Source: Heterodontus francisci
Taxonomy: Eukaryota
DNA length: 64,000 nucleotides
Direction of reading: 5' to 3'
Assembly: GCF_036365525.1 (NCBI RefSeq)
Contig: NC_090404.1
Span: forward strand, 10,416,001 to 10,480,000
Each line of letters begins with the position of its first letter. Position 1 is the first letter of the stretch. A program made the position numbers and the translations under genes. The notes below the pieces were generated by a model. It saw nothing but the letters and a program-made list of their open reading frames with translations, ran no database searches and was not told where the DNA came from. Below, piece after piece: positions 1-36,756 of this stretch.

Positions 1-21
1 GCTTCCCACGGTACAAAAACT
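1..21 (+). other. 3' end of the RSS (spacer tail + nonamer ACAAAAACT at 13-21) of a NAR-TCR V gene lying just upstream of the window
   Basis: Bases 1-75 align to the reverse complement of the RSS spacer, nonamer and flank of the NAR-TCR V on the - strand near 36180-36260 (gcttccc..acaaaaact..cact..cagattatc..cggagttaatctgccg). Confidence 0.85.
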
Positions 22-364
22 CTCACTGCAGATTATCACATGAAAAAGCGGAGTTAATCTGCCGGTGAACCCCACAGTTCCGCCTCGCACCGACTCCCCA
101 CAGTCTAGTTTATAATGAGTTGGATTATTGCCGTTAACATCTTGAGTTTTATAAATGCCGAGTGTGCGCGGATGGTGATATCTTTCCCGGGATCGGTGTC
201 AATGAATGGAGATTGGGAATGACTGATCCCAGTGACAAATCCCTAACACCAGATGGGATACTGATCTAACCGCTGGAATCGGGAACCGCATTCCCCGCCG
301 TTAAACTAATGTCCCCACATCTCACCAAGTACCAGCGGATTTGAAGCTGTCTTGAAGCACAGTG

Positions 365-378
365 TTTACTGGAATGGC
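365..378 (+). CDS. NAR-TCR D segment, cassette 1 (TTTACTGGAATGGC), flanked by 12-RSS on both sides
   Basis: 5' side: nonamer GGATTTGAA 337-345, 12-nt spacer, heptamer 358-364. 3' side: CACAGTG 379-385, 12-nt spacer, ACAAATACC 398-406. Open in all three forward frames. Confidence 0.88.
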
Positions 379-768
379 CACAGTGGGTGAAACCTGAACA
401 AATACCTCTGCACAATTAAAATAGAAGCTCCCCGGGCTCGGTTCCCGAATTGTAGGGCTGATGCTATTATCGTTGTAATACGGCTTAATTTGATAGTAAT
501 TTCCTCCTTTCTATTATCTTCGTCTGATATTTTCCTCCGTTTAAACGAAGCACCCATCCCCAGCCCGTGATCCTGGGCCATGTTACCAAGAGCTCAGAGT
601 CTCACAAACACCAGTTTGAACAGAGAGGAATGTGAAACATGGAATTTTGTTTATTAATCTAAAACCCCTGGAATAATTGGGTTGTGTCTATAGCCTGGTG
701 ATGTGTGGCCGGCAGGTTGAGGTGTTGGCAGTTCTTGCACCAGGCTGACTGAGAACGGTGTCACTGTG

Positions 769-816
769 ACACTGAATACGTGGATGGTTCCGGGACGGTA
801 GTGACTGTCACAGCGG
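769..816 (+). CDS. NAR-TCR J segment, cassette 1 (TEYVDGSGTVVTVTA)
   Basis: Nonamer-like AGTTCTTGC 730-738, 23-nt spacer, CACTGTG 762-768; IgNAR-like DGxGT motif; phase-1 donor GTAAGT at 817. Confidence 0.9.
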
Positions 817-1549
817 GTAAGTGACTGCAAACCCCGCCGTGCTACAGACTGTCCTGGTGAATGTTCACCCTCAGTTTATTATTGCGATCAATATCACCTC
901 AATCCCTTGAAAACAAAACAGAGCAGTTTCCTAATGAAGTTTTTCCATTGCAGTTTGAGATTCAGGGCAGATTATGAACCAGGAGTAGGTTCCAGGTTTG
1001 AGTCTGGAGACATGAGGTGAGATCTCCACAGAGAGGACAGTCTGCGGGGTGTTGACCGCATCGGGACCATCACTGGCTTTACGTGGACTTTGGAGGATCC
1101 CGAAAACACCCCAAACTCTTTCTCATTCTGATCCACAGTTGGTTTAAATGAGCGCAGATCGTCCAGACTCCGGCCTCCGCTCCCGCTGTTCACTGTGACA
1201 GAGGAAGCTCTGTCTGTCCCTGTAGGAACGGGAGAGGGTGACAGAGCTCTGTCAGTCTGCGGCAGGATAGTCTATTCCGGGCCGGGCAGTGTGATTGAGG
1301 TACCGGGAGAGTGAACCCAACAATAAAGCAGCCCCTTCGATACCTGCAGCCACCTGTCCGATACCGACAGTTAAATGGAGGGACACAATATATTCCCAAT
1401 GCTAATTTAGCAAGTCTGAAGGGATAAATCATAGCTGCAGCGCAGAATAGCGATTTGGGTAAAATCCAGCTGTTTGAGGCAGGAACGGCCAGGTGGTTTA
1501 ATAACGGTAATAAGGGAGCGACTAAGGCCACAACAGAGAAAAATAATAT

Positions 1550-3350
1550 AAAAATAAATTGAAGGGCGCTATATCTGAATTCACGCAGCACTCGTAAGAA
1601 GACAGATAAATTAACGGTACAGTTGGGGATTAATGTATTTGATCTTGAAGCCAATATACAACTCAATATAGGCAAAACTAGGCAAAATGAAAAAGGAAAC
1701 GGGATAGGCCGGATAATAAAGGATGAGGTAAAGAGCATTAGTGAGAAAGGATCTTAGACCAAAAAGTCAGGATCTGAAATTAGTATGGAGCTACGAAATA
1801 AGAAAGTGCAGAAAACAGTGGTGAATTAAAAACAATCATATTGTTAGCCGGAGTCTAAATCAGCAAGTTAGAGGAGCATGTAACATGACGAATGCAATAA
1901 TCATGGGGGACTGTAATCTCTATATAGTGAGCAAATCAAATTGACAAAAGTAGATTGGAGGACGAGATTCAGGAATACATTCGAGACACCTATCTAGAAC
2001 AATATGTCGAGGAAACTAACTACGGAATTGACTATCTAATACTTTGTAACGGGACTATATTTATTCATAATCTTAAATTAATGCATTCTCTGGGAAAGAG
2101 TGATCCTAATATAATAGATGTCATATTCAATTTGAGAGTAATATGCTGCAGCCCAGAACTAGGGTCTTAAATTTGAAAAAGGTCAATTAGGGATGGATGA
2201 GGAGCGTGCAGGCTGCGCTAGACTGGGGGTTTTGATTAAAATAAGCAATGGCATACATTTAAATAAATCATTCATGATTCTCAACAAACATACATTCACA
2301 TTCAATAATAAAGGGGGGAAATAGAATATGAGAGTAAATTAACAAGAAAAATGAAAACAGATTGCAAGAACTTTTACATGTATGTTAAAACGAAGGGAAC
2401 AGTTAAAGTAAATGTGGACTCTTAGAAGCAGAGACAAGAGAAATTATAATTGGGATGAAGGAAATGGCCGGCACCTTATCCAGATATTTAGTGTCTGCCT
2501 TTGCAGTAGAGAACATAAAGAACATGAAGGAAACTTTGGAGAATCAAGTGTCTAATTAGTGAGAAAAAGTTAAAGTAATTCATATTAATAAAGAAAATAT
2601 ACAGGAAAAAATAATGGTATTAAAATCTCACAAATTCCCTCAAATCGATTGCCTAGCCGAGGGTTTTAAAAAAGGTATCTGCAGAGATAGTGGAATTCTT
2701 GGTTGGAACTCAGAATTTTCTGGATTCTGGAACAATACCGGTTGATCCAGAAAGGAGAGACAGAGAAAACAGGGAACGATAGGCCAGATAGCATCGGTAA
2801 TATATACAAAATACTAACATCTATTATAGGGGACATAGTGGCAGGGAAATAAGAAATTCATCATATAATTAGGCAGAATCAAGATGGCTTTATGAAAGAG
2901 AAATCGTATATGACAAATCTATTCGCGTTTTTGAGGTTTCACTAAAGGGCAGTTTAAAAGGAACGAATGGATGCAGTAGATTTGGATTTTCAGAAGGCAC
3001 ACAGCACGTTGTTACACAATATTTTGGAGTATTATATTAGCATGGATTTAGGATTTGTTGAGAATCAGGAAACAGTGAGTAGGAACAAATAGCCCATTTT
3101 TGGGATGGCAAGGTGTAACTAATAGCGTGACACAAGTATCGGTGTTTGGGCAACAGCTATTTCCAATCTATTTCAATGATTTAGATGACAGACAGAATGT
3201 AATAGATCCAAGTTTGCTGACTATACAAAGCTAGGTGGGAAAATAAGCTGTCAGGAAGGTGCAAGCAAGCTACAAAAGGACACAGGTCGGTTAATTGAGT
3301 GGGAAAGAAAGTGGCAGATGGAAGATAATGCGGGCAAGTATGAAATTATT
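1550..3350 (+). mobile_element. Old degraded CR1 LINE (ORF2 remnant) in the J-V intron
   Basis: Degenerate endonuclease/RT codons; paralogous copy on - at about 24570-25340 plus 33520-34720. Confidence 0.7.
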
Positions 3351-3359
3351 ACATAAATA

Positions 3360-4640
3360 GGATTACATCGGAAAAGGCCATTCAGGCCAGGTAGTCCATG
3401 CTAGCCTTCATGATCCACACGAGCCTCCTCCTATCTTTCCTCATCTAAACCTATCATCGTAAGCCGATATTCCCTTCTTCCTCATATGCTTGTCTAAGCT
3501 CCCCTTAAATCCATCTATACTATTCAGTTCAATCGCTCTCCATGGTAGCGCGTTCCACATTTTCACCATTCTCTGAGTAAAGATGTATCTTCTGAATTCC
3601 CAATTGGATTTCTTGGTGACTACCTTATATTGATGGCCTCTTGTTATGATCTTCCCCACAAGTGGAAACATTCTCTCTGTATTCACGCTATCAAAACCTT
3701 TCATAATTTTAAACACCTCTACTTGATTACCCCTCAACCTTCTGTTTTCAAGAGAAAAGAGACCCAGCCTGTTCATCCTTTCCTGTTATGTATACTCACA
3801 CATTTCTGGTGTCATCCTTGCAAATCTTCCCGAGTGCCTCCAAATCCTTTTTATAATAAGAGGACCGGAGCTGTTGTGTGGTCTAACCAAGGTTCTTAAC
3901 AGGTTTATCATATTTTCCCTACGTTTCAATTCTATTTGTTCTAGAAATAAAGCCTAGTGTTTGGGTTTCTTTCTTTATGAGCGATCTACCCTATGGTGCA
4001 ACTTTTAGTAATTGATGTATGTTGTATTTGTACTCCGAGATCCCTTTGTTTCTCTACCTCACCTAGAATCGCACCATCCAAAGTAATGAGACCTCCCTAT
4101 TCTCCCTGCCAAAATGTACTATCTCACATTTACCTGCGTTGAACTTAATTTCCCGACTATTCTCCCATTCTTCAAGTTTATTCACGTCCTCCTGTTAATT
4201 GCTATTGTCCTCCTCAGTATTGACCAGCACCACCACCCACCCCACCAGCAGCCGCCCCCCACCGCCCCCCCCCACCCCCCACCCCCGGCCCTCCCCACCC
4301 GCCAATTTGGTGTCATCCAGAAATTTAGAAATTGTGTTTTTGATTCCAAAGTACAAATTGTTAATGCAAATTGTGAACAGCAGTGGTCCCAGCACTGATA
4401 CTTGGGGGATAACACTTCCCAATGTCTGACATTCTGATTAATTATCCTTTACTTCCATTCTATGCTTTCTGGCTTAAACCAGCAAGCAACCCATCCTGCC
4501 ACAGGTTCCTTTACTCCACATTCTCTAGCCTTATTCATTAATCTGTTATAGGATACCTTATGGAAGGCCTTTAGAAAAAAACAGATCAATGGCATTCACG
4601 ACATTACTATTGCCCACTCTCTCTGTTACTTCCAAACAAT
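3360..4640 (-). mobile_element. Degraded CR1 LINE 3' portion
   Basis: ORFs 3441-3776 and 4195-4422 carry CR1 RT motifs ([34 protein letters not shown]). Confidence 0.8.
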
Positions 4641-6902
4641 CAATAATCCTGTCCATTTTGACAGGAATCACAATCACAGAACGTTAACATGCTGGTACAG
4701 AAAGCAATTGGGATGGGAATTGATATTTTAGCCTTTATTGCAAGGGCCTTGGATTGCAAGAGTAAGACCATCTGCAGAGCATGTGTCAGGCCATTTTGCT
4801 GCAATTCTCGATAGCTTTGCAGAGACCAAATCTGTTGTTGTCATCGACTGAACATTCACAACACACTAAGTTACAGAAGTCCAAATATTTACAGTTCGTT
4901 GAATGAAGGAATTACTTTTGATCGCATTCCTCGCATTCCTAGGTGAATGGCTCTTTCAGAGAACTAGTCGGACACGACGGGCCGAATGGGCCTCTTCCGA
5001 GCTGTAACAATTCTATGTTTCTATAAATGAGTCATTCATTACCCTGGGCCTTTGACTCCTAGTGCTAGGTTCACCACATCGGCGATATGGCCTACTATTA
5101 CTCGTCGGTCTTATATTGTTACCTTGTGTTCTTAATAACAGCAAACATTTCAGGCGGAACATCTTCATTCAGGGAGTGGTGAGAATGTGCAACTCGCTAT
5201 CACGTCGAGCAGTTGAATCAATGCATTTAAGGGGAAGCTACCGTAACACTTGAGAAAGAAAGAATATCTTGATAGTGTGAGATGCAGTAGCGTGTAAGGC
5301 GGCTCGTGTGGAGCATAAACACCGGCATGGACTGAGTTGGTCCGAATGGCCTGCTTCTGCTGTACATCATGCGATAGTTTATGTAATACATATTTTTCAT
5401 GTATGAGAAATAGGTTTGCAGGAATTCATTTGCATCCTTGGTTACTCTAAATGAAATAAAACGTGGCTGTGAGCGAGTCAGGGCGAGGTGCGAATGTTCT
5501 TTGCAAAACAGACAGAGGAACAGCCGAAGGAGTGCAGACTGGAAGAAAGTCAATTTGTGACTGGCAAGAAATAATTCACCGAAAGGGAGAGACATACTGA
5601 ACTTCACCGGTCAGGTGGGATTCTGCAGACACCGATCTCAGGGCTGTTCAAATCCAATCCAACGCCGGGAAGTGAGTTTTACTAGAGGGACGGGCTGCGA
5701 TTGGATTCCGGTATTTTGCTCAACCTTGGATTTTTAATACACCTGAGAAAAGACATTAACAGCAATCCACATCTATCTGGAAAGATTGAACAGCTGAGGC
5801 TCTTATCTCTGGAAAAGAGAAGACAGCAAGGAGACCTGGTGGACAAAATTAAAATGCTAAACTTGTTAGCAAGGTTCCAGGTGCAGAAAATGTTTTCAAT
5901 TGTCGGCGAGTCCAGAACAAAGAGCCATAAATATAAGACATTAATGGACAGAAAAAATAAAGACTTGAGGAAGAATTTATTTACACAGAGTCGAATTGGC
6001 AGTTGGAGAATATGGCATTGATTCACTTTAGGGGAGGCTTGGAAACGTACAGGAGTGTGAAATGAATCGAGGGACAAAGAGGTCAGGATGGGAAGAGGTT
6101 ATGAAAGTGGGAGGAGACTCCTGTCGAGTATAAAACTGGAATAGACCAGATGGGCCGAATGGCCTGTTCATGCTCTGCAGCTTCTGTACATATTAAACGT
6201 AGAGAAGTTCTGTTTTGCGAACAGGGTAGATGTCAGCCAATGGGCTGAAGGAATTGAAATTGTCAGAGATCCTGAAGTGCCGGTTCCCAGTGAGTAACAG
6301 TAAAACCATTGCGGAAACTGCACAAACTGAACTCAACTGACAACTGAGAGACGTTGGGTCAAGTTCCCAGGACGGTAAAATTCAGCAATAGTAACCAAAT
6401 GAACGACCCCGATGTATAAATAAATCGAAGTACCCATATAAACCTGAGACTAAAGTGAAATGGAACAAAACAGACCCCTTCTTGGGAAAAAAACAAATAG
6501 AGCTTGAGGCAGGCACCCCTTGAAGGGTGAAACTGCAATTAAACTCTGATCTTCAACACACAGATGTTAAACGTCACTTGGCCCAATTGTGCTCATGAAT
6601 CTCACTGCTTCCTGTTGGAACTTTCCATGCTCAGTTAAACATAACACAGCTGGGTTACATCCGGGCAAACATTTTTGGAAGGTGATTGTCTCCTTGAGGA
6701 GAATAGACTAGTAAAATGTTCCTGCGATATGTCTTTCACCAAGAAAAATAGAAACATAAATTTAATACATAATATAGAATCGTGCAACACAGAATGAAAA
6801 CATTCGGTCCATCTTACTTTTGCCGGCTCCTTCACTTAGACCCACTCCTGCTCCTTCCCCACAGCCAATTCTTCCTTCTCCAGTATTTATCCAATGTCCT
6901 AG

Positions 6903-8192
6903 CGAGAGACAGCATGGTTTTGTGAAGGGGATGTCGTGTCTTACTAATTTGATCGAGTTTTTTGAGGAAGTGACGAAGATGATTGATGAGGGAAGGGCGG
7001 TGGATGTTGTCTATATGGACTTTAGTAAAGCCTTTGACAAGGTCCCGCATGGCAGACTGGTGCAAAAGGTGAAGTTACACTGGATCAGAGGTGAGCTGGC
7101 AAGATGGATACAGAACTGGCTCGGTCAAGAAGACAGAGGGTAACAGTGGATGGGTGTTTTTCTGAATGGAGGGATGTGACTAGTGGTGTTCCGCAGGGAT
7201 AAATGCTGGGACCTTTGCTGTTTGCAGTATATATAAATGATTTGGAGGAAAATGTAGCTGGTCTGATTAGTAAGTTTGCAGACGACACAAAGGTTGGTGG
7301 AGTTGCGGATAGTGATGAGGATTGTCAGAGGATACAGCAGGATATAGATCGATTGGAGACTTGGGCAGAGAAATGGCAGATGGAGTTTAATCCGGACAAA
7401 TGTGAGGTAATGCATTTTGGAAGGTCTAATGCAGGTGGGAAGTATACAGTAAATGGCAGAACCCTTAGGAGCTTTGACATTGAGAGAGATCTGTGCGTAT
7501 AGGTCCATAGGTCACTGAAAGTGGCAGCGCAGGTGGATAAGGTAGTCAAGAAGGCATACGGCATGCTTGCCTTCATCAGTCGGGGCATAGAGTAAAAAAA
7601 TTGACAAGTCATGTTGCAGCTGTACAGAACCTTAGTTAGGCCACACTTAGAATATTGCGTGCAATTCTGGTCGCCACACTACCAGAAGGACGTGGAGGCT
7701 TTGGAGAGGGTACAGAGGAGGTTTACCAGGATGTTGCCTGGCCTTGAGGGCATTAGCTATGAGGAGAGGTTGGATAAACTCGAATTGTTTTCACTGGAAC
7801 GACGGAGGTGGAGGGGCGACATGATAGAGGTTTACAAAGTTATGAGCGGCATGGACAGAGTGGATAGTCAGAAGCTTTATCCCAGTGTGGAAGAGTCAGT
7901 TACTAGGGGGCATAGGTTTAAGCTGCGAGGGGTAAGGTTTCGAGGGTATGTGCGAGGCAAGTATTTTACACAGAGGGTGGTGAGTGCCTGGAACTTGTTG
8001 CCAGGGGAGGTGGTGGAAGCAGATAAGATAGAGACGTTTAAGAGACATCTTGACAAATATATGAATAGGAAGGGAATAGAGGGATATGGGCCCCGGAAGT
8101 GCAGAAGGTGTTAGTTTCGGCAGGCATCAAGATCGGCGCAGGCTTGGAGGGCCGGATGGCCTGTTCCTGTGTTCTTTGTTCTTTGTTCTTTG
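6903..8192 (+). mobile_element. 5'-truncated CR1 LINE with (TGTTCTT)n tail
   Basis: RT motifs [49 protein letters not shown]; short tandem-repeat 3' tail. Confidence 0.92.
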
Positions 8193-8410
8193 TTATTGAA
8201 CCTGCATCCACCGCCTTCTCAGACAGTGCATTTTGGATCATAACAGCTCGCTGTGCAAATTAATTTCTCCACAGCTTCGAGCTGAATAAAGTTGGAACAG
8301 ATTTCATAAGAAGTAAAGCCATACCCCAAAAGGCAGAAACATGTCTTAATTGACAAGCTTATCCAGGTAAAAAGCGAATGAAGACATAACATGACATTTT
8401 CATTCTACAG

Positions 8411-8713
8411 ATTCCAGTTCAATGGTGTCGCGGAGTCCGCCTCGACAAACCTCTGCTGTTGGTGACACGGTTACTTTGAGCTGTGAATATTCAGGGTTCT
8501 GTCAGTACACAGTACACTGGTACCGTCAGCCCCCAGGGCAGGCTCCGAAATACCTGCTTCAGATACACACTTCAAGAGACCAAAAAGAAAACACAGCCGG
8601 GGGACGAATTTCTGTATCAATCGATCCTGCCGAGAAAATCAGCCGGTTAAACATCTCCAAACTACAACTGAGCGACTCAGCTGTGTATTACTGTGAACTG
8701 AGTCGGCGCACAG
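8411..8713 (+). CDS. Leaderless supporting TCR-delta V exon of NAR-TCR cassette 1
   Basis: Acceptor ttctacAG at 8409-8410, in phase with the J at 769-816. (D)SSSMVSRSPP..TLSCEYSGFCQYTVHWYRQ..DSAVYYCELSRRTA. Extra Cys in CDR1, no leader exon found, consensus 23-RSS at 8714-8752. Confidence 0.9.
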
Positions 8714-9000
8714 CACAGTGATACAGAGCACGGAGAGAGCTGTACAAAAACCTGAACATGGTGGAGATCACAGACACACAGTGATACAGAGCACGGGAAG
8801 AGCTGTACAAAGACCTGAACATGATGGGGATTACAGACACACAGTGATACAGAGCACGGGAAGAGCTGTACAAAAACCTGAACATGGTGGAGATTACAGA
8901 CACACGGTGATACAGAGCACCTAGAGAGCTATGCTAAAACCTAAACATGTTGGGGTTTACAGCAACACAGTGACACAGAGTACGACGAGAGCTGTACAAG
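8714..9000 (+). repeat. Tandem 23-RSS array, + strand, part 1 (5 x 63-bp units)
   Basis: Heptamers at 8714, 8777, 8840, 8903 (CACGGTG) and 8966, each with a 23-nt spacer and ACAAAAACC-like nonamer; the last nonamer is cut by a CR1. Confidence 0.95.
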
Positions 9001-11414
9001 CAGTCAGGCAGAGATAGGGGAGCAGATATGTCGGTAAATCTCAGACTGGTAAAAATAAGAGGGTAATAATAGTACGGTATTCCAAAAATCCCCAATATTA
9101 ACTGGGATACTCTTAGTGCAAAAGGCATAAAGGGGGCAAAATTCTTAAAGTGCATCCAGGAGAGCTTTTTGAGCCAGCACGTAGAAAGTCCCAGAAGAGA
9201 AGGGGCAGTGCTGGACCTAATCCGAGGCAATGAAGCCGAACAATTGGTGGAATTGTCAGTGGGGTAGCATTTCAAGGATCGTGACCATAACTCTGTAAGA
9301 TTTTAAAGTGGTTATGGAAAAGGACAAAGATGGACCGGAAATAAAGGTACTGAATTGGGGGAGGCCGATTTCAATATGATAAAAGAGAATCTGACCAAAT
9401 GTAGTGGGAGCAGCTATTTGTAGGGAAGTCTACATCAGACCAGTGGGAGTCATTCAAAAAGGAAATAGTGAGAGTTCAGGGCCAACGTGTTCCCGTAAAG
9501 GTGAAGGGTCGGACCAACAAGTTCAGGGAACCCTGGATGTCAAGGGATATAGAGGATTGGATAAGGAAATAAAGGAGGCTTATGGCAGATTCAGAGGGCT
9601 GAAAACAGCGGAGGCACTAAAGGAGTATAGAAAGTGAAGGGGGTACTTAAAAAAGTAATTAGGAGAGCGAAGAGGGTCATGAAAAAACACAGGCAGACAA
9701 GAGAAAGGAAAATCCCAAGGCGTTATATAAGTATATTAATGGCAAGAGGATAACCAGGAAAATAGTAGGACCCATTAGGGACCAACGTGGCAATGTGTGT
9801 GTGGAGCCGGAGAACGTAGGTGAGGTTTTAAATGATTGCTTTTCATCTGTGTTCACTATGGAGAAGTACGATGTAGGTATAGAGATCAGGGAGGGGGATT
9901 GTGATATACTTGAACAAATTAGCATTGAGAGGGAGGAGGTATTAGCGGTTTTAGCGGGCTTAAAAGTGGATAAATCCTCAGGCCCAGATAAGATATATCC
10001 CAAGCGGTTATGCGAGGCAAAGGAGGAGATTACAGGGGCTCTGACACAAATTTTCAAATCCTCTCTGGCCACCGGAGAGGTGCCAGAGGCCTGGCGGACA
10101 GCGAATGTGGTACCATTATTCAAGAAGGGTAGCAGGGATAAACCAGGTAATTACAGGACAGTGAGTCTAACATCAGTGGTAGGCAAACTATTAGAAAAAA
10201 TTCTGAGGGACAGGATTAATCTCCACTTGGAAAGGCAGGGAATATTCAGGGATGGTCAGCATGGCTTTGTCAGGGCGAAATCATGTCTGACAAATGTGAC
10301 CGAATTTTTCGAGGAGGTGACTAGGTGTGCTGATGAGGGTAAAGCATATGGTGTAGTCTACATGGACTTCAGTAAGGCTTTTGATAAGGTCCCGCATGGG
10401 AGATTGGTTAAGAATGTAAGAGCCCATGGGATCCAGGGCAATATGGCAAATTGGATCCAAAATTGGCTTAGTGGAAGGAGGCAGAGGGTGATGGTCGAGG
10501 GTTGTTTTTGCGAGTGGAAGTCTTTGACCAGTGGGGGATCAGTACCGGAGGGATCAGTGCTGGGACCCTTGCTGTTTGCAGTGTACATTAATGATTTAGA
10601 CGCAGATATAGTAGGTATGATCAGTAAGTTTGCAGAAGGCACAAAAATTGGTGGTGTCGTAGATAGTGAGGAAAGCCTTAGATTACAGGATGATGTAGAT
10701 GGGCTGGTAAGATGGGCAGAGCAGTGGCAAATGGAATTTAATCTTGGGAAGTGTGAGGTGATGCATTTTAGGAGGACTAACAAGGCAAGATAATATAAAA
10801 TGGATGGCAGGACCCTAGGAAGTACAGAGAGTTAGGGGGACCTTGGTGTACTTGTCTACACATCACTGAAGGCAGCAGCACAGGTAGATAAGGTCGTTAG
10901 GAAGGCTTATGGGATACTTTCCTTTATTAGCCGAGGCGTAGAATATAAGAACAGGGAGGTTATGATGGAGCTGCATAAAACGCTAGCTAGGCCACAGCTG
11001 GAGTACTGTGTACAGTTCTGGTCACCACACTATAGGAAGCATGTGTTTGCACTGGAGTGGGTGCAGAGGAGATTCAACAGGATGTTGTCTGGGCTGGAGC
11101 ATTTCAGCTATGAAGAGAGACTGGATAGGCTAGGATTTTTTTCCTTAGAGCAGAGAAGGCTGAGGGGGGACCTGATTGAGGTATACACAATTATGAGGGA
11201 CATATAAAGGGTAGATAGGAATAAACTATTTCCCTTAGCAGAGGGTTCACTAAACAGGGGGCATAGATTTGATGATAGGGGCAGGACGTTTAGAGGGGAT
11301 TTGAGGGGAAAAAGTCACCCAGAGGGTGGTTGGAATCTGGAACACACTGCCTGAAGGGGTGGTAGAGGTAGGAACCCTCACAACATTTAAGAAGTATTTA
11401 GATAAGCACTTGAA
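9001..11414 (+). mobile_element. CR1 LINE (ORF2 endonuclease-RT, decayed) inserted in the RSS array
   Basis: ORF 9795-10793 and neighbours have CR1 RT motifs; no 3' UTR or tail; ends directly against a heptamer. Confidence 0.92.
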
Positions 11415-11603
11415 CACAGTGATACAGAACAGGGAGAGAGCTGTGCAAAAACCTGAACATAGCGGAGATTACAGGCACACAGTGTTATCGAGCACGGGGA
11501 GAGCTGTGCAAAAACCTGAACATGGCGGAGATTACAGACACACAGTGACACAGAGCATGGAGAGAGCTGTACAAAAACCTGAACATGGCGGAGATTGCAG
11601 ACA
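11415..11603 (+). repeat. Tandem 23-RSS array, + strand, part 2 (3 x 63-bp units)
   Basis: CACAGTG at 11415, 11478, 11541; 23-nt spacers; nonamers GCAAAAACC, GCAAAAACC, ACAAAAACC. Confidence 0.93.
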
Positions 11604-12664
11604 CTTTCAGGGGATGAATCATTAACAACATGTATATTCTACAAGGAGAGCCCCCTCGCACAATTTTCTGGAAGAAGCCAAAAATGATTTATGATTTTTC
11701 CATCTATCACACAACCTATATACAACTCTGCTCATCGGTTGCACAAGTTTCTAAATCTACCTACGAATACCGTATGAACAACCAATAAAAAAACTGAATT
11801 TATATATATTGTTTTCCTTTCATGGGATGTGGGTGTTGCTGGCTCGGACAGCATTTATTGCCCGTCCCTAATTGCCCATGAGAAGGTGGTGGTGAGCTGC
11901 CTTCTTCAATCACTGCAGTCTATGTGTGCTAGGTACACCCACAGTACTAATAGGAAGGGAGTTCCAGGACATAGACACAGCGATAATGAACGAACCGCGA
12001 CCAAGTTCCAATTTAGGCTTGGAGGGGAACTTTCAGCTGGAGGTGTTCCCACGCTTCTTCTGCCCTTGTCCTTCTCGGTGGTAGTGGTTGTGGGTTTGGA
12101 AGGTGCTCCCTGAGTAGCCTTGGTGCATTGCTGCAGTGTATCTTGTTAACAACCGGTTGGGGAATGCGCATGTGCGGCCCGTTCTCCCAGAGTCAGCGGG
12201 GACCGTGCCACTTAGGCGCCTTTCCTAACCGCTGTGAATTTTGGGAGGAGCAGGCCCCATCATTAACTCAGTCCATTGAAACACAACTTCCTTCCAGCGG
12301 GGAGTTGCCCGCGTTGCTCGGACTGACAGACTGCCAGTGTCCTTTTGTGTGGCGAGAATCTCCGAGCAGATTGAAGATTTAATCCGGGAAATGCCGGGAG
12401 GTAGTGGCCACCCATCAACCCAATTGATGGGAGAAACCTTTTTTTTACACTAAATGAGGTGAAAAAGAGGCATGACTGCAAGAATTATTACAACTTGTGA
12501 TTTGGATAGGAGACTCGAAAGAGAGGAATATTAAAGGGCGTGAGGAGCACTAAATAAAGTGAAGACTAAATGAGCTGTTCCATTTTGCTCCATGAGGTAC
12601 AATTCTAAAATAATTGAGAATATATAAATGAAGAATATGTGTACCCCCCCCCCACTTCCTGCTT

Positions 12665-12931
12665 CGTATCGCTGTGTGCCTGCAATTCCCACTAAATGCA
12701 GGATTTTGTACAGCTCTCTCCGTGCTCTGCATCACTGCCTGTAATTCCCAGACTGTTCACGTTTTCGTACAGCTCTCTCCGTGCTTTGGATCACTGTGTG
12801 TCTGAAATTTCCCCCATGTTCAGGTTTTTGTACAGCTCTCTCCGTGCTCTGTATCACTGTCCATCTGAAATCTCTACCATGTTCAGGTTTCTATACAGCT
12901 TTCTCTGCTCTGTATCACTGTGAATCTCTAC
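12665..12931 (-). repeat. Distal, decayed part of the - strand RSS array (about 5 units)
   Basis: Same unit consensus; heptamer positions about 12670, 12733, 12792, 12855, 12916; several with mutated heptamer, nonamer or spacer length. Confidence 0.85.
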
Positions 12932-12959
12932 GGATCACCGTTTGCAGTAAGGGTGGCAC

Positions 12960-15900
12960 AGCGTGCAGACTTCGCCCGAGTGAGACGTAGTCAGAGTGCA
13001 ACGTTTGGTATTTGGTTCACGTGGGAATTTGGTGCACAGGAAAAAGAAGAATTGACGTGTGACGTTCCAGCGAAGAAGGTAAGCGATTGGTTGGTGAGAA
13101 TTTTCACTTTCTCTTTTATCTAAATAAAAGAATGTTAATTGCAGTTAGTGTAATATTAATTGGAATAATAAGAAGAAGAATATTCTGAGATACAGAAAAT
13201 TTACAGGTCAGGTTTTATTAGTGGCAGTAAGGTTTACCAGCAGGAATAAGGTTTCGTCGTAGTGAGGTTTATTATTTATAAATTAATTACGGAAAATAAA
13301 TTTACACGTCATGTAGGTTGCAGGGCAGGTGATGTGATCCGGCTGCAGTCTGTAGGGGCTAATGAACGCCACTAAAATCCACGGCAAACACGTCTCCGGC
13401 TCAAGGAGCATCGATTCAGAGTCAATGAGCTGAGGACCGAGCTGCAGACACTGCACGGCATCAGGGAGGGGGAAGCTTCCTGGACTCTTTGTTCCAGAAG
13501 GCAGTCACATCACTTAGGATAGGGTCTTCTGATTTGGTCAGAGGTCAGGCACAGGAGGGTGCGACTGCGATTGAGGATGGTAAGGGAATCAAGAAGGCAG
13601 AAGTGGAGGAGCGTCAACCCTTGCAATTGTCCATTAGGTTTGAGATTCTTTCAGCTGGTATGGATGAGAGCGAGGGCTGCAGGGTGGATGTGCAAAACTG
13701 ACCATGGTATCGTGACACAGGAAGCCATTCAAGTGGGGGGAGTAAATAAAAATGTATTAGTAGTAGGGGACAGTATAGTCGGGGGTAGACACAGTTCTCT
13801 GCGGCCAAGAGCAAGGGTCCAGAAGGTTGTGTTGCCTGCTCAGGGCTGGAGAAAAACTTGCAGTGGGAAGCGGAGGATCCAGTTGTCGTGGTCCACGTGG
13901 GTTCCCACCACATAGATGTGACTAGGGAAGAGGTTCTGCAAAAGATGTATGAGCAGCTAGGGGTTAACTTAAAAAGTAGAACCTCAAAGGTAATAATCTC
14001 TGGGTTATTACTTGAGCCACGAGCAAATTGGTGCAGAGTAAATAGATCAGAAATTTAAATGCGTGGCTCAAACATTGGTGCAGGAGAAATGGGGTTCGAT
14101 CCATTGGCACCGGCACCAGTACTGGGGAAAGTGGGAGCTGTACTGTTTGGGACTCTCTTCACCTGAACCGTGCTGGGACGAGTATTCTGGCGAGTCGTAT
14201 AAATAGGGAAGTAGAGAGGGCTTTAAACTAAATAGTGAGGACGACGGATCAAGTGTGCGAATGAGTGATAATTTCGAGAGAGAAAGGAGAAGGTGAGATC
14301 GCAAAACGGGTAATGATAATCAGAGTATGGCAGGAACGGACAGAGCGTACAAACTTAAGAGTGCGCCAGCAGATAAGGCTAGAGGTTGGAAACTAACAGT
14401 GGTGGGGAGGGTTCGGTGAGGACAGACTTAGAAATCGAAAGAGAAAGGTTGAGAAATCGGAACTGTATAGCTTTGTGGGTAAAGACAAGCAGAATGGGAC
14501 AGGAAGGGACAGAAAGTTTACCAAAAATTGTACATCAGCGAATAAGGTCATTGCAGGGAATAGAAGTGAAAGTGAAATTGTAAGTTCTTTATCTGAATGC
14601 GTGAAGCATCTGAAATAGATGGATGATCGAGTGGTACAGATAGAGGCCAATTATTTAGATCTAATCGCTTCTCAGAGGCATGGTTACGTGGTAATCAAGG
14701 TTGGGAATTAAATATTCCAGGAAATATTTTGGAAAGACAGACAGATGGCAAAGGAGGAGAGGTAAAGGATGACAGAAGGACATGAATGAGAAAGGATCTG
14801 GCCTCCGAAGATCATGAAGTAGAATCAGCATGGGCCGAAATTAGGAACAGCAAGATTCAGAAAACACTGGTGGGCGTAGTTTATAGTCTCCCTCTCAGTA
14901 GTTATACCTGTCTACAGAGAATTAAACATGAAATTATTGGAGCTTATAGCAAAGGCAATATAATAATTGTGGGGGATTTTAATCTTCATACAGGCTGGGA
15001 CAATGAAATTGACAAGAGTGGTCCGGAAGATGAGCTTGTAGAATTTTTTTCAGGGCAGTTTCTTGGAGCAATACATCGTGGAACTGACTAGGTATACAGC
15101 TATCTGCACTAGTATTGTGTAGTGAAGCAGGGTTCATTAGTAATGTCATAGTAAAAGATGTACTGGGAAATAGTGATCATAATACCATGTTAAGCTTAAA
15201 AGTGTCATACTCCAATCACAAACAAGAATCTTAAACGTAAACAACGCCAATTACGTAGATATTAAGGGAGAACCGGCGAAAGTAAATTGGTAAGTAGGCA
15301 AAAAGTTATGGCGGTAAATTATCAGTGGGAAACCTTTAAAGAAACTATTCAAAATGTTCAACAAAAATACATTCCATTGAAAAGCAAAAGCTCAGCAAGA
15401 ACGATCCACCCGTGGCTATCAGATTAAAAGAAGAGACTTACAATGCTGCAAAAAAGAGTAGCAAGTCTCAGGTTTGGGAGTGTTTTAGAAACCAGAAACG
15501 GGCCACCAAAAAGTTGATAAAAAAGGAAAAAAAAAAGAATATGAGAGTAAGTTAGCCAGTAGTACAAAAGACTGTAAGATCTTTCATAGGAATATAAAGA
15601 GGAAGAGAGCAGCTAAAGTAAACGTTGGTCCCTTTGAAGAAGAAAGAGGAGAAATTATCATGGGGAATGAAGAAATGGCAGAGGCATTGAACAAATAATT
15701 TGTGTCCGTCTTCAAAGTAGAAGACATAAGTTCCATACCAGAAATAGATGGCAACCTAGGGTCTAAAAACAGTGAGGAAATTGAGGAACTTAATATCAGC
15801 AGTGAAAAATTATTGGCGAAACATAAGGGCCTAAAATCTGCCAAATACCCGGGAACTGATGGCCTATACTCTTGGGTTCTAAAAACGATTGCTGCAGAGA

Positions 15901-18650
15901 CATTGGATGCGCTAGCTATGAGCTTCCAAAATTCCTCAGATTCGGGGACTGTCCCATCAGATTGGAAGTTAGCAAATGTTACAATGCTTTTCAAGAAAGG
16001 CGGGAAAGAGAAAACAATGAACCACAGGCCATATAGCCTTACATCAGTCGTTGCAAAAACGATATAATTATTATTAAGGAAGTTAAAAAAAACCACACTA
16101 TGATTAGAACAAGTCAACATGGTTTTAAAAGGAAATCCTGCTTGACAAATTTATTAGAGTTTTTTGAGGATGTCACTAGCATGGTAGATAAAGGGGAACC
16201 AGTAGATGTAGTAAAACAGGATTTTCAGAAGGCATTCGATAAGGTGCCACACAAACGGTTAATAGCCAAGGGCTCATGGACTTGGGAGTAATATATTAAC
16301 ATGTGTTGGTTAACGGATAGGAAGCAAAAAGTGGGCATGAAAGGGGCATTTTGAAGTTCGCAGGCAATGAATAGTGGAGTGCCACAAGGATCAGTGCAGG
16401 GGCCTCAGCTATTCACAATATATATTCATCACTTAGAAGAAGAGGCAGAGAGTAATGTATCTAAGTTTGCTGATGATACAAAGGTCGGTGAAACGGTTAG
16501 CTGTGAGGAGGATGTAGGGAGGCTGCAAAGAGATATAGACAGGTTAAGTGAGTGGGCAACAAGATGACAGATGGGAGAGAATGTAGGGAAGTGTGAAGTT
16601 GTTCATTTTAGTCGTAAGAATAGAAAAGCAGAATATTTTCAAAAGGTGTGAAGCTTGAAAGTATTGATGCTCAAAGAGATTTGGGTGCACTTGTAGAAGG
16701 AACAAAAAAAGTTAGCATGCAGGTGCAGCAAGAGATTAGGAAGGTAAATGGCATGTTGGACTTTATTTCTTTTTTTTATTCATTCATGGGATATGGGTGT
16801 CGCTGGCCAGGCCAGCATTTATTGCCCATCCCTAATTTCCCTTGAGAAGGTGGTGATGAGCTGCCTTCTTGAACCGCTGCAGTCCATTTGGGGTAGGTAT
16901 ACCCACAGTGCTGTTAGGAAGGGAGTTCCAGGATTTTGACCGAGCGACAGTGAAGGAACGGCGATATAGTTCCAAGTCAGGATGGTGTGTGACTTGGAGG
17001 GGAACTTGCAGGTGGCGGTGTTCCCATGCATTTGCCGTCCTTGTCCTTCTAGTTGGTAGAGGTCGCCGGTTTGGAAGGTGCTGTCTAAGGAGGCTTGCTG
17101 CATTGCTGCAGTGCACCTTGCAGATGGTACACACTGCTGCCACTGTGCGTCGGTGGTGGAGGGAGTATAAGTTTGCAGATGGGATGCCAATCAAGCGGGC
17201 TGCTTTGTCCTGGATGGTGTCGAGCTTCTTGAGTGTTGTTGGAGCTGCACCCATCCAAGCAAGTGGAAAGTATTCCATCACACTCCTGACTTGTACTTTG
17301 TAGATGGTGGACAGGCTTTTGGGAGTCCGGAGGTGAGTTACTCGCCTCAGGATTCCTAGCCTCTGACGTGCTCTTGTAGCCACGGTATTTATATGGCTAC
17401 TCCAGTTCAGTTTCTGGTCAGTGGTAGCCCCTAAGTTGTTGATAGTGGGGGATTCAGAGATGGTAATGCCATTGAATGTCAAGGGGAGATGGTTATTTTC
17501 TCTCTTGTTGGAGATGGTCATTGCCTGGCACTTGTGTGGCGCGAATGTTACTTGCCACTTATCAGCCCAAGCCTGGATATTGTCCAGGCCTTGCTGCATT
17601 TCTACACGGACTGCTTCAGTATCTGAGGAGTCAGGAATGGTGCTGAATATTGAGCAATCATCAGCGAACATCCCCACTTCTGACCTTATGATTGAAGGAA
17701 GTTCATTGATGAAGCAGCTGAAGATGGTTGGGCCTCGGACACTACCCTGAGGAACTCGTGCAGTGATGTCCTGGCGCTCAGATGATTAACCTCCAACAAC
17801 CACAACCATCTTCCTTTGCGCTAGGTATGACTCCAGCCATTGGAGGGTTTCCCCCCTGATTCCCATTGACCTCAGTTTTGCTAGGGCTCCTTGATGTCAT
17901 ACTCGGTCAACTGCTGCCTTGATGTCAAGGGCAGTCACTCTCACCTCACCTCTTGAGTTCAGCTCTTTTTTCCATGTTTGAACCAGGGCTGTAATGAGGT
18001 CAGGTTCTCAAGGAGATGACAAGGAGATTGGAGTACAGGAATAGAGACGTTTTGCTGCAATTGTACAGAGTTTTGGTGAAACCACATCTGGAGTACTGTG
18101 TACAGTTTAATTCTCCACATTTAAGGAACGATATACTTGCATTGGAGGCGGTACAGCAAAGGTTCACTAGATTGGTCCCTGGGATGAGGGTTTGTCCTAT
18201 GATGAGAGGCTGAGTAAATTGGGCCTATATTTTCTGTAGTTTAGAAGAACGGGAGGCGTTCTCATTGAAACATACAAGATTCTGAAGGAGCTGGATAGGG
18301 TAGATACTGAGCGATTGTTTCCGCTGGCTGAGGAATCCAAAATACTGGGGAACAGTCTCAGGATAAGGGGACGATTATTTCGGTCTGAGGTGAGGGAAAT
18401 TACTTCTCTCAAAGGGTCGTGAATCTTTGGAATTCTCTACCCCAGAAAGTTATGGATGCTCCATCGTTGAATACATTTGCGGCTCGGACTGAAATTTTTT
18501 TTGTCTCTCAGGGAATCAGGGCATATGGCGAATGGGCCGGAAAGTGGAATTGAAGCCCAAGATCAGCCATATCGTATTGAATGGCGAAGCAGTCTCGCGA
18601 GGATGCATGGTCTGCTCCTGCCTCTATGCCCTGTGTCCTTGTGGTCTTGT
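12960..18650 (+). mobile_element. Near-full-length decayed CR1 LINE (ORF1 esterase-like + ORF2) inserted in the - strand RSS array
   Basis: ORF1 motifs (VLVVGDSIV, PVVVVHVG), endonuclease motif (IIVGDFNL), RT motifs, 3' tail at about 18630-18650; array units on both sides. Confidence 0.88.
16768..18008 (-). mobile_element. Nested non-LTR retrotransposon 3' fragment (CR1/L2-group RT, different family)
   Basis: ORF 16832-17677 (MFADDC..WADKWQVTF..YKVQVRSVMEY); interrupts the host CR1 ORF2. Confidence 0.85.
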
Positions 18651-18657
18651 ATGATCA

Positions 18658-19509
18658 GGATTTTGTACAGCTCTCTCCGTGTTCTGTATCACTGTGTGTC
18701 TGTAATCCCCACCATGTTCAGGTTTTTATACAGCTCTCTCCGTGATCTGTATCACTGTGTGTTTGTAATCCCCACCGTGTTCAGGTTTTTGTACAGCTCT
18801 CTCCGTGTTCTGTATCACTGTGTGTCTGTAATCCCCACCTTGTTCAGGTTTTTGTACAGCTCTCTGCGTGTTCTGTATCACTGTGTGTCTGTAATCCCAC
18901 CATGTTCAGGTTTTTGTACAGCTCTCTCCGTGTTCTGTATCACTGTGTGTCTGTAATCCCACCAGGTTCAGTTTTTTGTACAACTCTCTCCGTGTTCTGT
19001 ATCACTGTGTGTCTGTAATCCCCACCTTGTTCAGGTTTTTGTACAGCTCTCTCCGTGTTCTGTATCACTGTGTGTCTGTAATCCCACCATGTTCAGGTTT
19101 TTGTACAGCTCTCTCCGTGCTCTGTATCACTGTGTGTCTGTAATCCCCACCTTGTTCAGGTTTTTGTACAGCTCTCTCCGTGTTCTGTATCACTGTGTGT
19201 CTGTAATCCCACCATGTTCAGGTTTTTGTACAGCTCTCTCCGTGTTCTGTATCACTATGTGTCTGTAATCCCACCATGTTCAGTTTTTTGTACAGCTCTC
19301 TCCGTGTTCTGTATCACTGTGTGTCTGTAATCCCCACCTTGTTCAGGTTTTTGTACAGCTCTCTCCGTGTTCTGTATCACTGTATGTCTGTAATCCCCAC
19401 CTTGTTCAGGTTTTTGTACAGCTCTCTCCGTGTTCTGTATCACTGTGTGTCTGTAATCCCACCATGTTCAGGTTTTTGTACAGCTCTCTCCGTGCACTGT
19501 ATCACTGTG
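18658..19509 (-). repeat. Tandem 23-RSS array, - strand, V-proximal part (14 units of 62-63 bp including the V-proximal RSS)
   Basis: Heptamers start (+ coordinates) at 18690, 18753, 18816, 18879, 18941, 19003, 19066, 19128, 19191, 19253, 19315, 19378, 19441, 19503. All have 23-nt spacers, most have ACAAAAACC, and 12 of 14 heptamers are CACAGTG. Confidence 0.97.
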
Positions 19510-19815
19510 CTCCACGTCGACTCAGTGCACAGTAATACACAGCTGAGTCACTCAGTTGTAGTTTGGAGATGTTTAACTGGCTGCTTTTCTCGGCAGGATT
19601 TATTGATGCAGAAATTCGTCCCCCGGCTGCGTTTTCCTTATTCTGGTCTCCTGAAGTGTGTATCTGAAGCAGGTATCTCGGAGCCTGCCCTGGGGACTGA
19701 CGGTACCAGTGTACTGTGTACTGACAGAACCCTGAATATTCGCAGCTTAAAGTAACAGTGTCACCGGCAGCAGAGGTTTGTAGAGGCGGACTCCGGGACA
19801 CCAGGGAACTGGAAT
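19510..19815 (-). CDS. Leaderless supporting TCR-delta V exon of NAR-TCR cassette 2
   Basis: Acceptor tcctgcAG at 19817-19816; (D)SSSLVSRSPPLQ..TLSCEYSGFCQYTVHWYRQ..DSAVYYCALSRRGA; close paralog of 8411-8713; consensus 23-RSS at 19509-19471. Confidence 0.9.
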
Positions 19816-24309: not shown

Positions 24310-24536
24310 AAAAGCAAAATACTGCGGATGCTGGAAATCTGAAACAAAAACAAGAAATGCTGGAATCACTCAGCAGGTCTGGCAGCATCTGTGGAAAGAG
24401 AAGCAGAGTTAACGTTTCGGGTCAGTGACCCTTCTTCGGAACTCCGAAGAAGGGTCACTGACCCGAAACGTTAACTCTGCTTCTCTTTCCACAGATGCTG
24501 CCAAACCTGCTGAGTGATTCCAGCATTTCTTGTTTT
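24310..24536. mobile_element. Palindromic short insertion (Penelope-like end) with 13-bp target-site duplication
   Basis: 94-bp arms 24347-24440 and 24443-24536 with one mismatch; GGTTTGTTTCTAT duplicated at 24297-24309 and 24537-24549. Confidence 0.8.
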
Positions 24537-25344
24537 GGTTTGTTTCTATGTCGCATATACTATGTAACCCTATGTGTGTAATAATTTCACACTTTCCCGC
24601 ATTATTCTCAGCCTGCCACATTCTTGCCCAGTCACTTAACCTATCTATGTCCCTTTGCAGCGTCCTTTCACTCTCTTCACAACTTATTTTCCCATCTAGC
24701 TTTGTATGCTCAGCAAACCAGGATGTACTACACTCAGTCCCTCATCTAAGTCATTGATTTAGATTGGAAAAAGCTGAGGTCCAAACACCGATCCTTGTGT
24801 CACGCCGCTAGTTACACTCTGTCATTCCAAAAATGGTCTGTTTATTCCAACTCTGTTTTTTGTAATTTAACAAACCCTAAATGCATGGTAATGCCAATCC
24901 CAATCCCATGAGACCTAATCCTCTGCAACGACATACTATGAGGCATCTTATCGAATGTCTTTTGAAAATCGAAATATAATGCATCCACCGGCTTCTTTTT
25001 AATTACCCTTCGAGAGAAACCCCAAAAAACCAGAACATATTTGTCAAACAGGATTTCTCCTTCACAAAACCAGGTTGATTCTGCCTAATTATATTCTGAT
25101 GTTCCGATTGCCCTATTACCATGTCCCCAATGATAGATTCTAATATTGTATATATTACTGATGTCAGTTGGCCTATAGTTCCCTGTTTTCTCTCTCTCTC
25201 TCCTTTCTGGAACAACGGGTTACATTTTCTACTTTCCAATCAATGGTACCGTTCTAGAATCTAAATCATTCTCAGATCAAACCAATAAGTTCACTCTCTC
25301 TGCAGATAGCTCTTTTAAAACCTTAGGCCGAGGCAATCGGTTAC

Positions 25345-31700: not shown

Positions 31701-33000
31701 AAGAGTCGCTTAAATGGCCCTAATGTATCTGCTTCTACTACCACCGCTGGCAGTGCATTCCACGCACCCACCACTCTCTGTGTAAAGAACCTACCTCTGA
31801 CATCTCCCCTAAACCTTCCTCCAATCACCTTAAAATTATGCCCCCTGGTGATAGACATTTCCACCCTGGGAAAAACTCTCTGGCTATCCACTGTCTCTAT
31901 GCCTCTCATCATCTTGTACACCTCTATCAAGTCACCTCTCATCCTTCTTCGCTCCAATGAAACCCTCCCCAACAGAACTATCAAATCTCCCTGCAAGGAT
32001 ATTAGTTCCTGTCGTGATAAAGCGCAGCCCGTCCATCTGGTACAGGTCCCACCTGCCCCAGAAACAATCCAATGCCTCTGAATCCAGATGTCCTCCCTCC
32101 TCTACCAATTCTCCAGCCACGTGTTCAATCGATCAATTCTCCTATTCCTATGCTCGTGGCACTGGGAGTATTCCGGAAATTACTGCTTTGGAGATCCTGC
32201 TTTTTAATTTCCTTCCAAACTCCCTAAAATCTGCTTTCAGAACCTCATCCTACCTATGTCATTGGTGCCAATGTGGACCACAACCACCGGCTGTTCACCC
32301 TCCCCCAGAAGGATGTCCTGCAGCAGCTCCGTGACATCCTTGACGCTGGCACCAGGGAGGCAACACACCATCCTGGAGCCATGTTTACTGCCACAGAAAC
32401 GCCTGTATGATCCCCTGACTATCAAATCCCCTATCACTATCGCTGTTCACTATCGCTCTAATTCTCCCCTCATGTGCAGCTGAGCCACCAGTGGTGCCAC
32501 GGACTTTGCTCTGGCTGCACTCCCCCGAGGAGCCATCTCTCTGTCCAAAATGGAAAACCGATTAACAAGCAAGATCGACTCAATGGACTCCTCCACTGCC
32601 TGCCCGGTTCTTATAGACTGCCTGGTGGTCACCCATTCCCTCTTTTCCCGCATGCTCCTAACCTGTGGTGTGACCACCTCCCTAAACATGCTATCCACGT
32701 AGTCCTCTGCTTCGTGGATGCACAACAATGACTCCAGCCACTGTTCGAGTACCAAAACCTAGAGCTCAAGCTTCTGCAGCCGGTGACACTTCCTGTAGAC
32801 GTGTTCGTCTCGGATATGAGGTGTGTCCATGACTTCCCAAATACCGCTGGACGTACATTCCACTTGGCCAAGCCTACCTGCCATACCGTAACTTTGAAGA
32901 CTGTTTTTTTTACAATGAGAAGTAAAATAAATTCACAGTTACTCACCAATCAACTTCGTCCCCCGTACCGAAGAGAGAGGCAGCTACTGGAGGCTGAAAA
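28724..33000 (-). mobile_element. Older CR1 LINE with ORF1 and ORF2 remnants; nested young CR1 3' end at about 31567-31958
   Basis: ORF1 motifs IGDLIVRG, CCLPGASVKD, PVVVVHIGTND; endonuclease ORF 30311-31144; RT fragments. Confidence 0.88.
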
Positions 33001-35042: not shown

Positions 35043-35425
35043 GCTTCCTGGGTCATATGATCGGAGGCTGGAGTCTCGGCAATCTGCGGTCATTTCAACC
35101 AACTGTGGATCAGAGTGAGAAGGAGTTTGGGATATTTTGGGAATCCACCGAGATCCACGTTAAACTAATGATGGTCCAGATGGGGTCAGCACCCCGCAGA
35201 CTGCCTTCTCTGTCGGGATCTCACTTCATCTCTCCAGACTCAAACCTGGACCCTCTTCCCAGTTCATAATCTCCCCTGAATCTAAAACTGTAATGGAAAA
35301 GTTCCATTAGGAAACTGCTCTGTTTTATTTTCAAGCGATTGAGGTGATATTGATCGCAATAATAAACTGTTGGGTGAATATTTACTCTTACAGTTTATAA
35401 CATGGCGGGATTTGCAGTCACTTAC

Positions 35426-35478
35426 CGGCTGTGACAGTCACTACCGTCCCTGATCCATCGACATATCTACTCTCGTAA
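35426..35478 (-). CDS. NAR-TCR J segment, cassette 2 (YESRYVDGSGTVVTVTA)
   Basis: Heptamer 35479-35485, 23-nt spacer, nonamer 35509-35517; phase-1 donor GTAAGT at 35425. Confidence 0.9.
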
Positions 35479-35869: not shown

Positions 35870-35886
35870 ACTTTTTCCCAAATAAA
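35870..35886 (-). CDS. NAR-TCR D segment, cassette 2 (TTTATTTGGGAAAAAGT), 12/12 RSS
   Basis: Heptamer 35887-35893 + 12 nt + ACAAAATCC 35906-35914; heptamer 35869-35863 + 12 nt + ACAAATACC 35850-35842; open in all three frames. Confidence 0.9.
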
Positions 35887-36278: not shown

Positions 36279-36756
36279 TGTTGTAGTAGTATTCGTACTC
36301 AGCTTTACAGTAATAGGTGGCGGTGTCTTCAACTCTCGCATCCCGAATTTTCAGAAAAAATGTTTTTTCTGCCTTATTCACCGACACATCAAATCGCCCT
36401 CCACCAGAGATCCGCTCCCACTCTGTCCCGGTCTGGGTTTGTCTGAAGAAATGTCCATTTAGGAAAGTATAATCCCAATAACCACCATTGTAAACACAGG
36501 TGATGGTGAGAGACTGACACTCCTTCCTGGTCACCGCTCCCGGGGTCTGTATCACTGACTGACTGAAAGAGCCTGGAAATTAAACAGAGAGAGTTTAATG
36601 GGCCATCAGAGCCGAACCACACAACGAGGCTAATACAGTGTCTGCAATTCGGATGGGCTCGGGCAGCTATATATAAAATCCACACAATGTCGGTTTGTTT
36701 GTTCGGTACTCACGGGGTAAACAGACACACAGGGTGAAAACAAGGAGGATTCCCAT
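36279..36756 (-). CDS. NAR-TCR V gene (VNAR-like): leader exon 36756-36714, V exon 36572-36279
   Basis: Leader MGILLVFTLCVCLP with a GT-AG intron; V = QSVIQTPGAVTRKECQSLTITC..ERISGGGRFDVSVNKAEKTFFLKIRDARVEDTATYYCKAEYEYYYN; VNAR-type short FR2/CDR2; extra FR1 Cys; RSS CACAACG + 22 nt + ACAAAAACT (36278-36241). Confidence 0.9.

Follow-up and report, generated by a model that had tools for sequence, protein, structure and literature searches.

V(D)J recombination uses one recombination signal sequence (RSS) per gene segment. In the window analysed here, a 64,000-nucleotide stretch of contig NC_090404.1 of the shark Heterodontus francisci (RefSeq assembly GCF_036365525.1, positions 10,416,001 to 10,480,000 of the forward strand, 0 N letters), we find eight RSSs standing head to tail behind a single V exon. 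This exon, V1, is the supporting V exon of a T cell receptor (TCR) delta cassette, and the array behind it (array A, 8714-11603) is divided by a retrotransposon fragment into the blocks A1 and A2. Two further arrays, B and C, lie on the opposite strand, and array C stands behind the supporting V exon of the inverted sister cassette, V2. The elements of this part of the window are the following (LTR, long terminal repeat; LINE and SINE, long and short interspersed nuclear element; RT, reverse transcriptase; ORF, open reading frame).

8411..8713, plus strand: supporting TCR-delta V exon V1, leaderless, directly 3' of a CAG splice acceptor
8714..8999, plus strand: array A1, 4 full 63-bp RSS units and a fifth cut at unit position 34
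9000..11414, plus strand: non-LTR retrotransposon fragment with an RT ORF at 9795-10793, both ends truncated, target-site duplication absent
11415..11603, plus strand: array A2, 3 full units, the array end being an exact unit end
12655..12922, minus strand: array B, 4-5 decayed units, V exon upstream absent, orientation as array C
12951..18645, strand not assigned: LINE and SINE fragments that separate array B from array C
18651..19509, minus strand: array C, following V2, with 14 units of two interleaved types (62 and 63 bp)
19510..19815, minus strand: supporting TCR-delta V exon V2 of the inverted sister cassette, leaderless, behind a CAG acceptor

The unit of array A is 63 bp long and consists of the heptamer CACAGTG, a 23-nt spacer, the nonamer ACAAAAACC and a 24-nt linker, with the first unit starting flush with the end of V1. 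Heptamers begin at 8714, 8777, 8840, 8903 and 8966 in the left block and at 11415, 11478 and 11541 in the right one, always exactly 63 bp apart within a block. Tandem Repeats Finder returns a period of 63, counting 4.5 copies for 8714-8999 and 3.0 for 11414-11604. Both agree with the eight units (5 + 3) at exact 63-bp spacing that an earlier note on this DNA had described. The same note held that CAC and a 23-nt spacer are kept in every unit, which is true for 8 of 8, but unit 4 is weakened and the nonamer of unit 5 is cut. The heptamer is CACAGTG in seven units and CACGGTG in unit 4. Six of the eight nonamers have 0-1 mismatch to ACAAAAACC, the nonamer of unit 4 (GCTAAAACC) has 2 mismatches, and that of unit 5 ends after ACAA, where the element is inserted at 9000. 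The units differ by 2-19% from their consensus and by 5-25% among themselves.

Throughout the window, heptamer-N23-nonamer matches with at most 2 mismatches occur 23 times, compared with 0.03 expected from shuffled sequence, and 22 of the 23 lie inside the arrays. The NAR-type V of the second cassette (36307-36519, minus strand) and three intact conventional V genes ending near 51258 (minus), 53508 (plus) and 54609 (minus) each have one RSS within 330 nt. The restriction of the arrays to the supporting V cassettes, also claimed earlier, thus holds within the window, and so does the estimate of about 27 units in all, with 27 counted over arrays A, C and B (8 + 14 + ~5). The reading frame of V1 meets a TGA at 8719-8721, in the first heptamer, so that only joining at unit 1 can yield a productive chain. 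Unit 1 is indeed the only RSS of array A that abuts a coding segment and gives an open frame on joining, while units 2-8 follow linker.

The 2.4-kb insert at 9000-11414 (plus strand) carries a 332-aa ORF matching Pfam RVT_1 with an E value of 1.6e-27, which identifies it as a fragment of a non-LTR retrotransposon. The two blocks of RSS units on its sides are out of phase: the left block breaks at unit position 34 and the right block resumes at position 1. We found no target-site duplication around the insert, and the 3' tail present in its sister copies elsewhere in the window is missing. A clean LINE insertion is ruled out by these three features, which together argue that a deletion came after the insertion. 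Units in one and the same orientation stand to the left and to the right of the fragment, so that the array predates the LINE, as had been proposed; strictly, this means that at least 2 units existed before the insertion. The retrotransposon junctions at 9000 and at 18645 both lie in or beside an A-rich nonamer, which may reflect a target preference or coincidence.

Could the array be an artefact of assembly, such as a stutter or a collapsed repeat? The probability of this is practically nil. We used Logan short-read contigs of runs X1 and X3, which come from the same organism and from one sample that is probably the source of the assembly. These contigs reproduce 11415-11848 with 0 differences, and one of them spans 8815-9048, across the left LINE junction. 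In addition, a retrotransposon fragment sits within the array, and stutter, which had been argued against before from unit divergence, is rejected on that divergence together with the agreement of the contigs. The presence of the array is settled by this; for the exact number of eight units the assembly is the source, since no listed record spans the whole array.

The two cassettes of the window are inverted relative to each other, and 1-8999 (plus) aligns with 36261-19226 (minus) at 74-84% identity. The pair spans 36 kb (1-36261), with the RSS arrays facing inwards and LINE and SINE fragments occupying the centre between them. Upstream of the two supporting V exons lie the NAR-type segments:

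1..21, plus strand: RSS end (spacer and nonamer) of the cassette-1 NAR-type V, whose exon is upstream of position 1; matched in alignment by the RSS of its cassette-2 counterpart
365..378, plus strand: NAR-type D of cassette 1, with 12-spacer RSSs on both sides, the 3' RSS from 379
769..816, plus strand: NAR-type J of cassette 1, heptamer CACTGTG at 762-768, donor GTAAGT at 817, exon end in phase 1
35426..35478, minus strand: NAR-type J of cassette 2, GTAAGT splice donor at 35425
35870..35886, minus strand: NAR-type D of cassette 2, between two 12-spacer RSSs
36298..36572, minus strand: NAR-type V exon of cassette 2, leader exon at about 36712-36755, single 22-spacer RSS

Cassette 2 is complete on the minus strand, with about 15.6 kb from its J to the leaderless V2. 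V1, V2 and the NAR-type V all belong to the V-set domains of Pfam. The ORF of V1 is an intact V-set (E 9.4e-20) with the conserved Cys, the Trp and the YYC motif. V1 has the properties of a supporting V-delta, namely a leaderless V-set exon, a splice acceptor and an upstream NAR-type J donor in matching phase. Phase 1 agrees between the cassette-1 J donor and V1, and the last base of this J, a G, together with the AT at 8411-8412 makes a GAT codon that continues in frame into the V1 ORF. Judged from exon order and splice phase, the arrangement of both cassettes is that of NAR-TCR genes, in which a supporting V-delta follows an upstream NAR-type V-D-J. Among contigs of the source organism, 13-16 distinct ones cover the 3' end of the V exon (8334-8834) and carry letters of sister copies, e.g. 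C at 8696. This depth suggests a sizeable family of supporting V genes.

The sister arrays differ in their state of preservation. The 14 units of array C are 94% alike and comprise interleaved types of 62 bp (CATGGTGG-GATT) and 63 bp (CAAGGTGGGGATT), for which Tandem Repeats Finder reports a higher-order period of 125 bp. This two-type structure points to recent unequal exchange, and together with the low divergence of about 4% it marks array C as a recent re-expansion and not an old array that was retained. Array B faces array A across about 1 kb and is separated from array C by 5.7 kb of mostly LINE and SINE fragments. At the level of BLASTN, no V remnant is found upstream of array B. In the simplest reading, array B is possibly the distal part of the cassette-2 array, cut off by retrotransposon fragments. 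A candidate target-site duplication joining B to C aligns weakly, with a score of 13 and with gaps. An inversion mediated by RAG was considered as the source of the facing arrays A and B and was rejected, as no heptamer-to-heptamer signal joint lies beside B.

For the age of the arrays, the divergence between the cassettes provides the yardstick, with Jukes-Cantor (JC) distances of 0.18-0.26 for non-coding sequence and a divergence of 0.084 for the V exons. The consensus units of A, B and C are only 1-3 nt apart, which indicates descent from one ancestral unit. Measured against this inferred ancestral unit, array A has changed at 40/475 sites (8.4%), array B at 35/265 sites (13%) and array C at 36/855 sites (4.2%). 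The unit divergence of A and B is about half of the non-coding divergence of the cassettes, so that array A should be roughly as old as the duplication. The 63-bp period, the linker and the left edge at the border of V and heptamer are common to the arrays, and this likeness in both cassettes argues for a single origin before the duplication. The proposal that the array predates the cassette duplication is therefore largely borne out by the common unit design and by the decay of A and B; what qualifies it is that gene conversion between the inverted cassettes is possible. If the arrays had arisen independently after the duplication, or had been copied between the cassettes by conversion, they would not be ancestral. 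We hold this to be very improbable. It draws on the clearly young expansion of array C and on the finding that only 2/62 sites distinguish the V-proximal units of arrays A and C, although the flanks differ by 18-26%. A low divergence of unit 1 is, however, expected of a working RSS, the identity of period, linker and left edge between A and C speaks against separate origins, and the divergence of single A and B units fits long independent decay.

Whether RSS positions and the remaining positions of the units change at equal rates is a question on which the earlier note let its reading depend, and the answer is divided: the heptamer changes less, and the nonamer changes at the rate of spacer and linker. 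On a neighbour-joining tree of the units, Fitch parsimony gives 0.43 steps per site for the heptamer, 1.13 for the spacer, 1.33 for the nonamer and 1.38 for the linker. For site counts, the old units that are not adjacent to V, i.e. units 2-8 of array A and the units of array B, were taken as the test set, and substitutions only were counted. In the test set, the nonamer is changed at 10/94 sites and spacer plus linker at 58/489 sites (p = 0.86), from which it follows that the full signal is not protected in distal units. Two units of array B have in addition lost heptamer bases by deletion, which lies outside the substitution counts. Selective upkeep of complete signals, which the note implies, finds no support in view of these deletions, the background rate of the nonamer and the re-expansion of array C; in distal units the heptamer alone may be somewhat protected. 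The V-proximal unit is 1 change away from the ancestral unit and unit 4 is 12 changes away. A near-ancestral proximal unit next to a decayed unit 4 fits selection on the working RSS only.

We conclude, at a probability of roughly 0.8, that the array is a minisatellite whose 63-bp unit comprises the full 23-RSS of an NAR-TCR supporting V-delta together with the 24 bp behind it, and that it has been inherited, is decaying and is tolerated. It would have started with one tandem duplication in an ancestral supporting-V cassette and would have been passed on when the cassettes duplicated. Copies would then have been gained and lost by slippage or unequal exchange, and decay would have proceeded by point mutation and insertions. 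The V-proximal unit would be kept intact as the working RSS, from which an array could be re-seeded. In lymphocytes, RAG is predicted to bind and cut most units, given that they match the RSS consensus. After cutting at a distal unit, the proximal 23-RSSs would still be on the chromosome, and a later join of unit 1 to a downstream 12-RSS could still rescue the allele. This scheme follows from what is generally known of V(D)J recombination. Because the proximal signals would survive a distal cut and a second join would be possible, the extra signals should be cheap to carry. In our best reading they would be tolerated passengers, at most decoys.

Several observations weigh against a minisatellite that is merely tolerated. 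In the test set of distal units, the heptamer is changed at only 1/73 sites, compared with about 11% in the rest of the unit (p = 0.004; within array A alone, p = 0.07), and this low rate may be a trace of selection on distal signals. Array C has a consensus nearer to the ancestor than neutral drift predicts, with 1-2 changes where 5.6-8 are expected (P 0.003-0.08); if it was re-seeded from the conserved proximal unit, no selection on distal units is needed to account for this. Finally, consensus signals persist behind both cassettes and in other organisms despite the non-productive cuts that they are expected to attract, and such persistence is not expected of a harmful passenger. The same observations speak for a selected device of several signals. 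In such a device, stacked 23-RSSs would raise local RAG binding or synapsis, with the result that the D-delta/J-delta recombination centre would capture the promoter-less supporting V efficiently or that decoys would tune its use. The nearly unchanged distal heptamers, the near-ancestral array C, the arrays kept behind both cassettes of the window and the tandem units in two further organisms could all be read in this way. We nevertheless consider it rather unlikely, since nonamers decay at the background rate and heptamers of two B units are lost by deletion, unit 4 is badly degraded, unit 5 was destroyed by the LINE without replacement, the copy number is free to range from 8 to 14-19, and each distal cut leads to a chain with an in-frame stop.

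A different question is how the first duplication came about. RAG acting in the germ line could have seeded the array through a nick or cut at the border of V and heptamer, followed by faulty repair or by re-insertion of a signal end. This concerns the origin only and is compatible with the minisatellite reading. Such an origin would account for the start of the repeat, which behind V1 and V2 alike lies within one base of the point where RAG cuts. Array A, moreover, closes with a complete unit. A priori, such a match has a chance of about 2 in 63. That RAG is active in the germ cells of sharks is known from immunoglobulin (Ig) genes (PMC2193156). The agreement of edge and cleavage site is, on the other hand, a single coincidence that was noticed after the fact, and the signal joint beside array B was not found, which leaves this origin distinctly unlikely. 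The end of the linker does not resemble the end of V1 or of V2. Taken more broadly, it is unlikely that the signals are something other than passengers, be it a RAG-capture antenna or decoy that sets the joining frequency of the supporting V, or a footprint of germ-line RAG at the border of V and heptamer.

Head-to-tail units are also indicated outside Heterodontus francisci. Two further organisms have contigs that match the V exon and the first units, among them one 506-nt contig that aligns over 8714-8890. Joints in these contigs step back 48 bases, with 10-12 letters between, as head-to-tail units would do, with as many as 14 distinct contigs at a single unit position. An exact 22-nt pattern of the unit has no match in metagenome contigs, and a protein-profile scan of metagenome contigs yields no relative. 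A protein search with the supporting V returns one truncated contig protein, which ends before the RSS, and one protein of Callorhinchus milii. The latter, P0002 in UniRef, an annotated elephant-shark protein, is the nearest named relative of the supporting V with 51% identity. The C-terminal tail of P0002 after YYCAVSP resembles read-through into an RSS, and its annotation therefore probably runs past the V end.

Shark NAR-TCR genes were reportedly described as doubly rearranging TCR-delta genes by Criscitiello et al. 2006. The cassettes of the window have the same order as such genes: the NAR-type L-V, D and J, the last ending in a splice donor, come first, and the supporting V-delta, which has no leader but a splice acceptor and its own RSS, comes next. 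A tandem RSS array behind the supporting V is, in contrast, not mentioned in the literature that we reached. The doubly rearranging NAR-TCR with supporting V-delta is a published layout (PMC12227049, citing Criscitiello et al. 2006). Our full-text literature search, in whose coverage subscription papers are mostly not included, brought up no account of V segments followed by tandem RSSs, and the array behind the supporting V is apparently undescribed.

The first unit, which abuts the V coding end, would pass for the canonical 23-RSS of a TCR or Ig V segment, with heptamer CACAGTG, 23-nt spacer and nonamer ACAAAAACC. What differs is the presence of 8 to at least 14 head-to-tail copies, and that units 2-8 are not attached to any coding segment and give a stop on joining. 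With minisatellites, or variable number tandem repeats (VNTRs), the arrays share the 63-bp head-to-tail unit, a copy number that varies between the paralogues (8 versus 14 + 5), the 125-bp higher-order structure of the sister array and a decay that grows with distance from the conserved end. Unlike them, the unit is here a complete recombinase target and the repeat starts at the recombinase cleavage site of a working V. Secondary or cryptic RSSs serve receptor editing and V replacement and are single, usually weak heptamers in coding or intronic DNA. Like these, the extra signals near V1 could permit further rounds of cutting; they are, however, full consensus signals stacked downstream of the V.

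A working V with up to fourteen consensus signals should waste most of its cuts. The persistence of the arrays behind paralogues and in other species therefore poses the question whether distal signals are shielded, whether wasted cuts are cheap as the proximal signal survives, or whether extra signals help V capture. How RSSs compete and how RAG scans in a basal jawed vertebrate could be studied on these arrays as they stand. If the antenna, the decoy or the germ-line footprint were true, they would amount to a natural experiment on competition between adjacent consensus RSSs. Even as mere minisatellites they matter for annotation, as automatic RSS finders will call many false gene segments here.

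The window contains further repeats. In the intron of cassette 2, the 200 bp at 24342-24541 are 97% identical to their own reverse complement and form a near-perfect palindrome. Two direct copies of a 646-bp element at 25347-25992 and 31569-32214 share 98.5% identity and are far younger than the surrounding duplication. A 67-bp tandem repeat at 61285-61579, with 4.4 copies and 75% matches, is not RSS-like.

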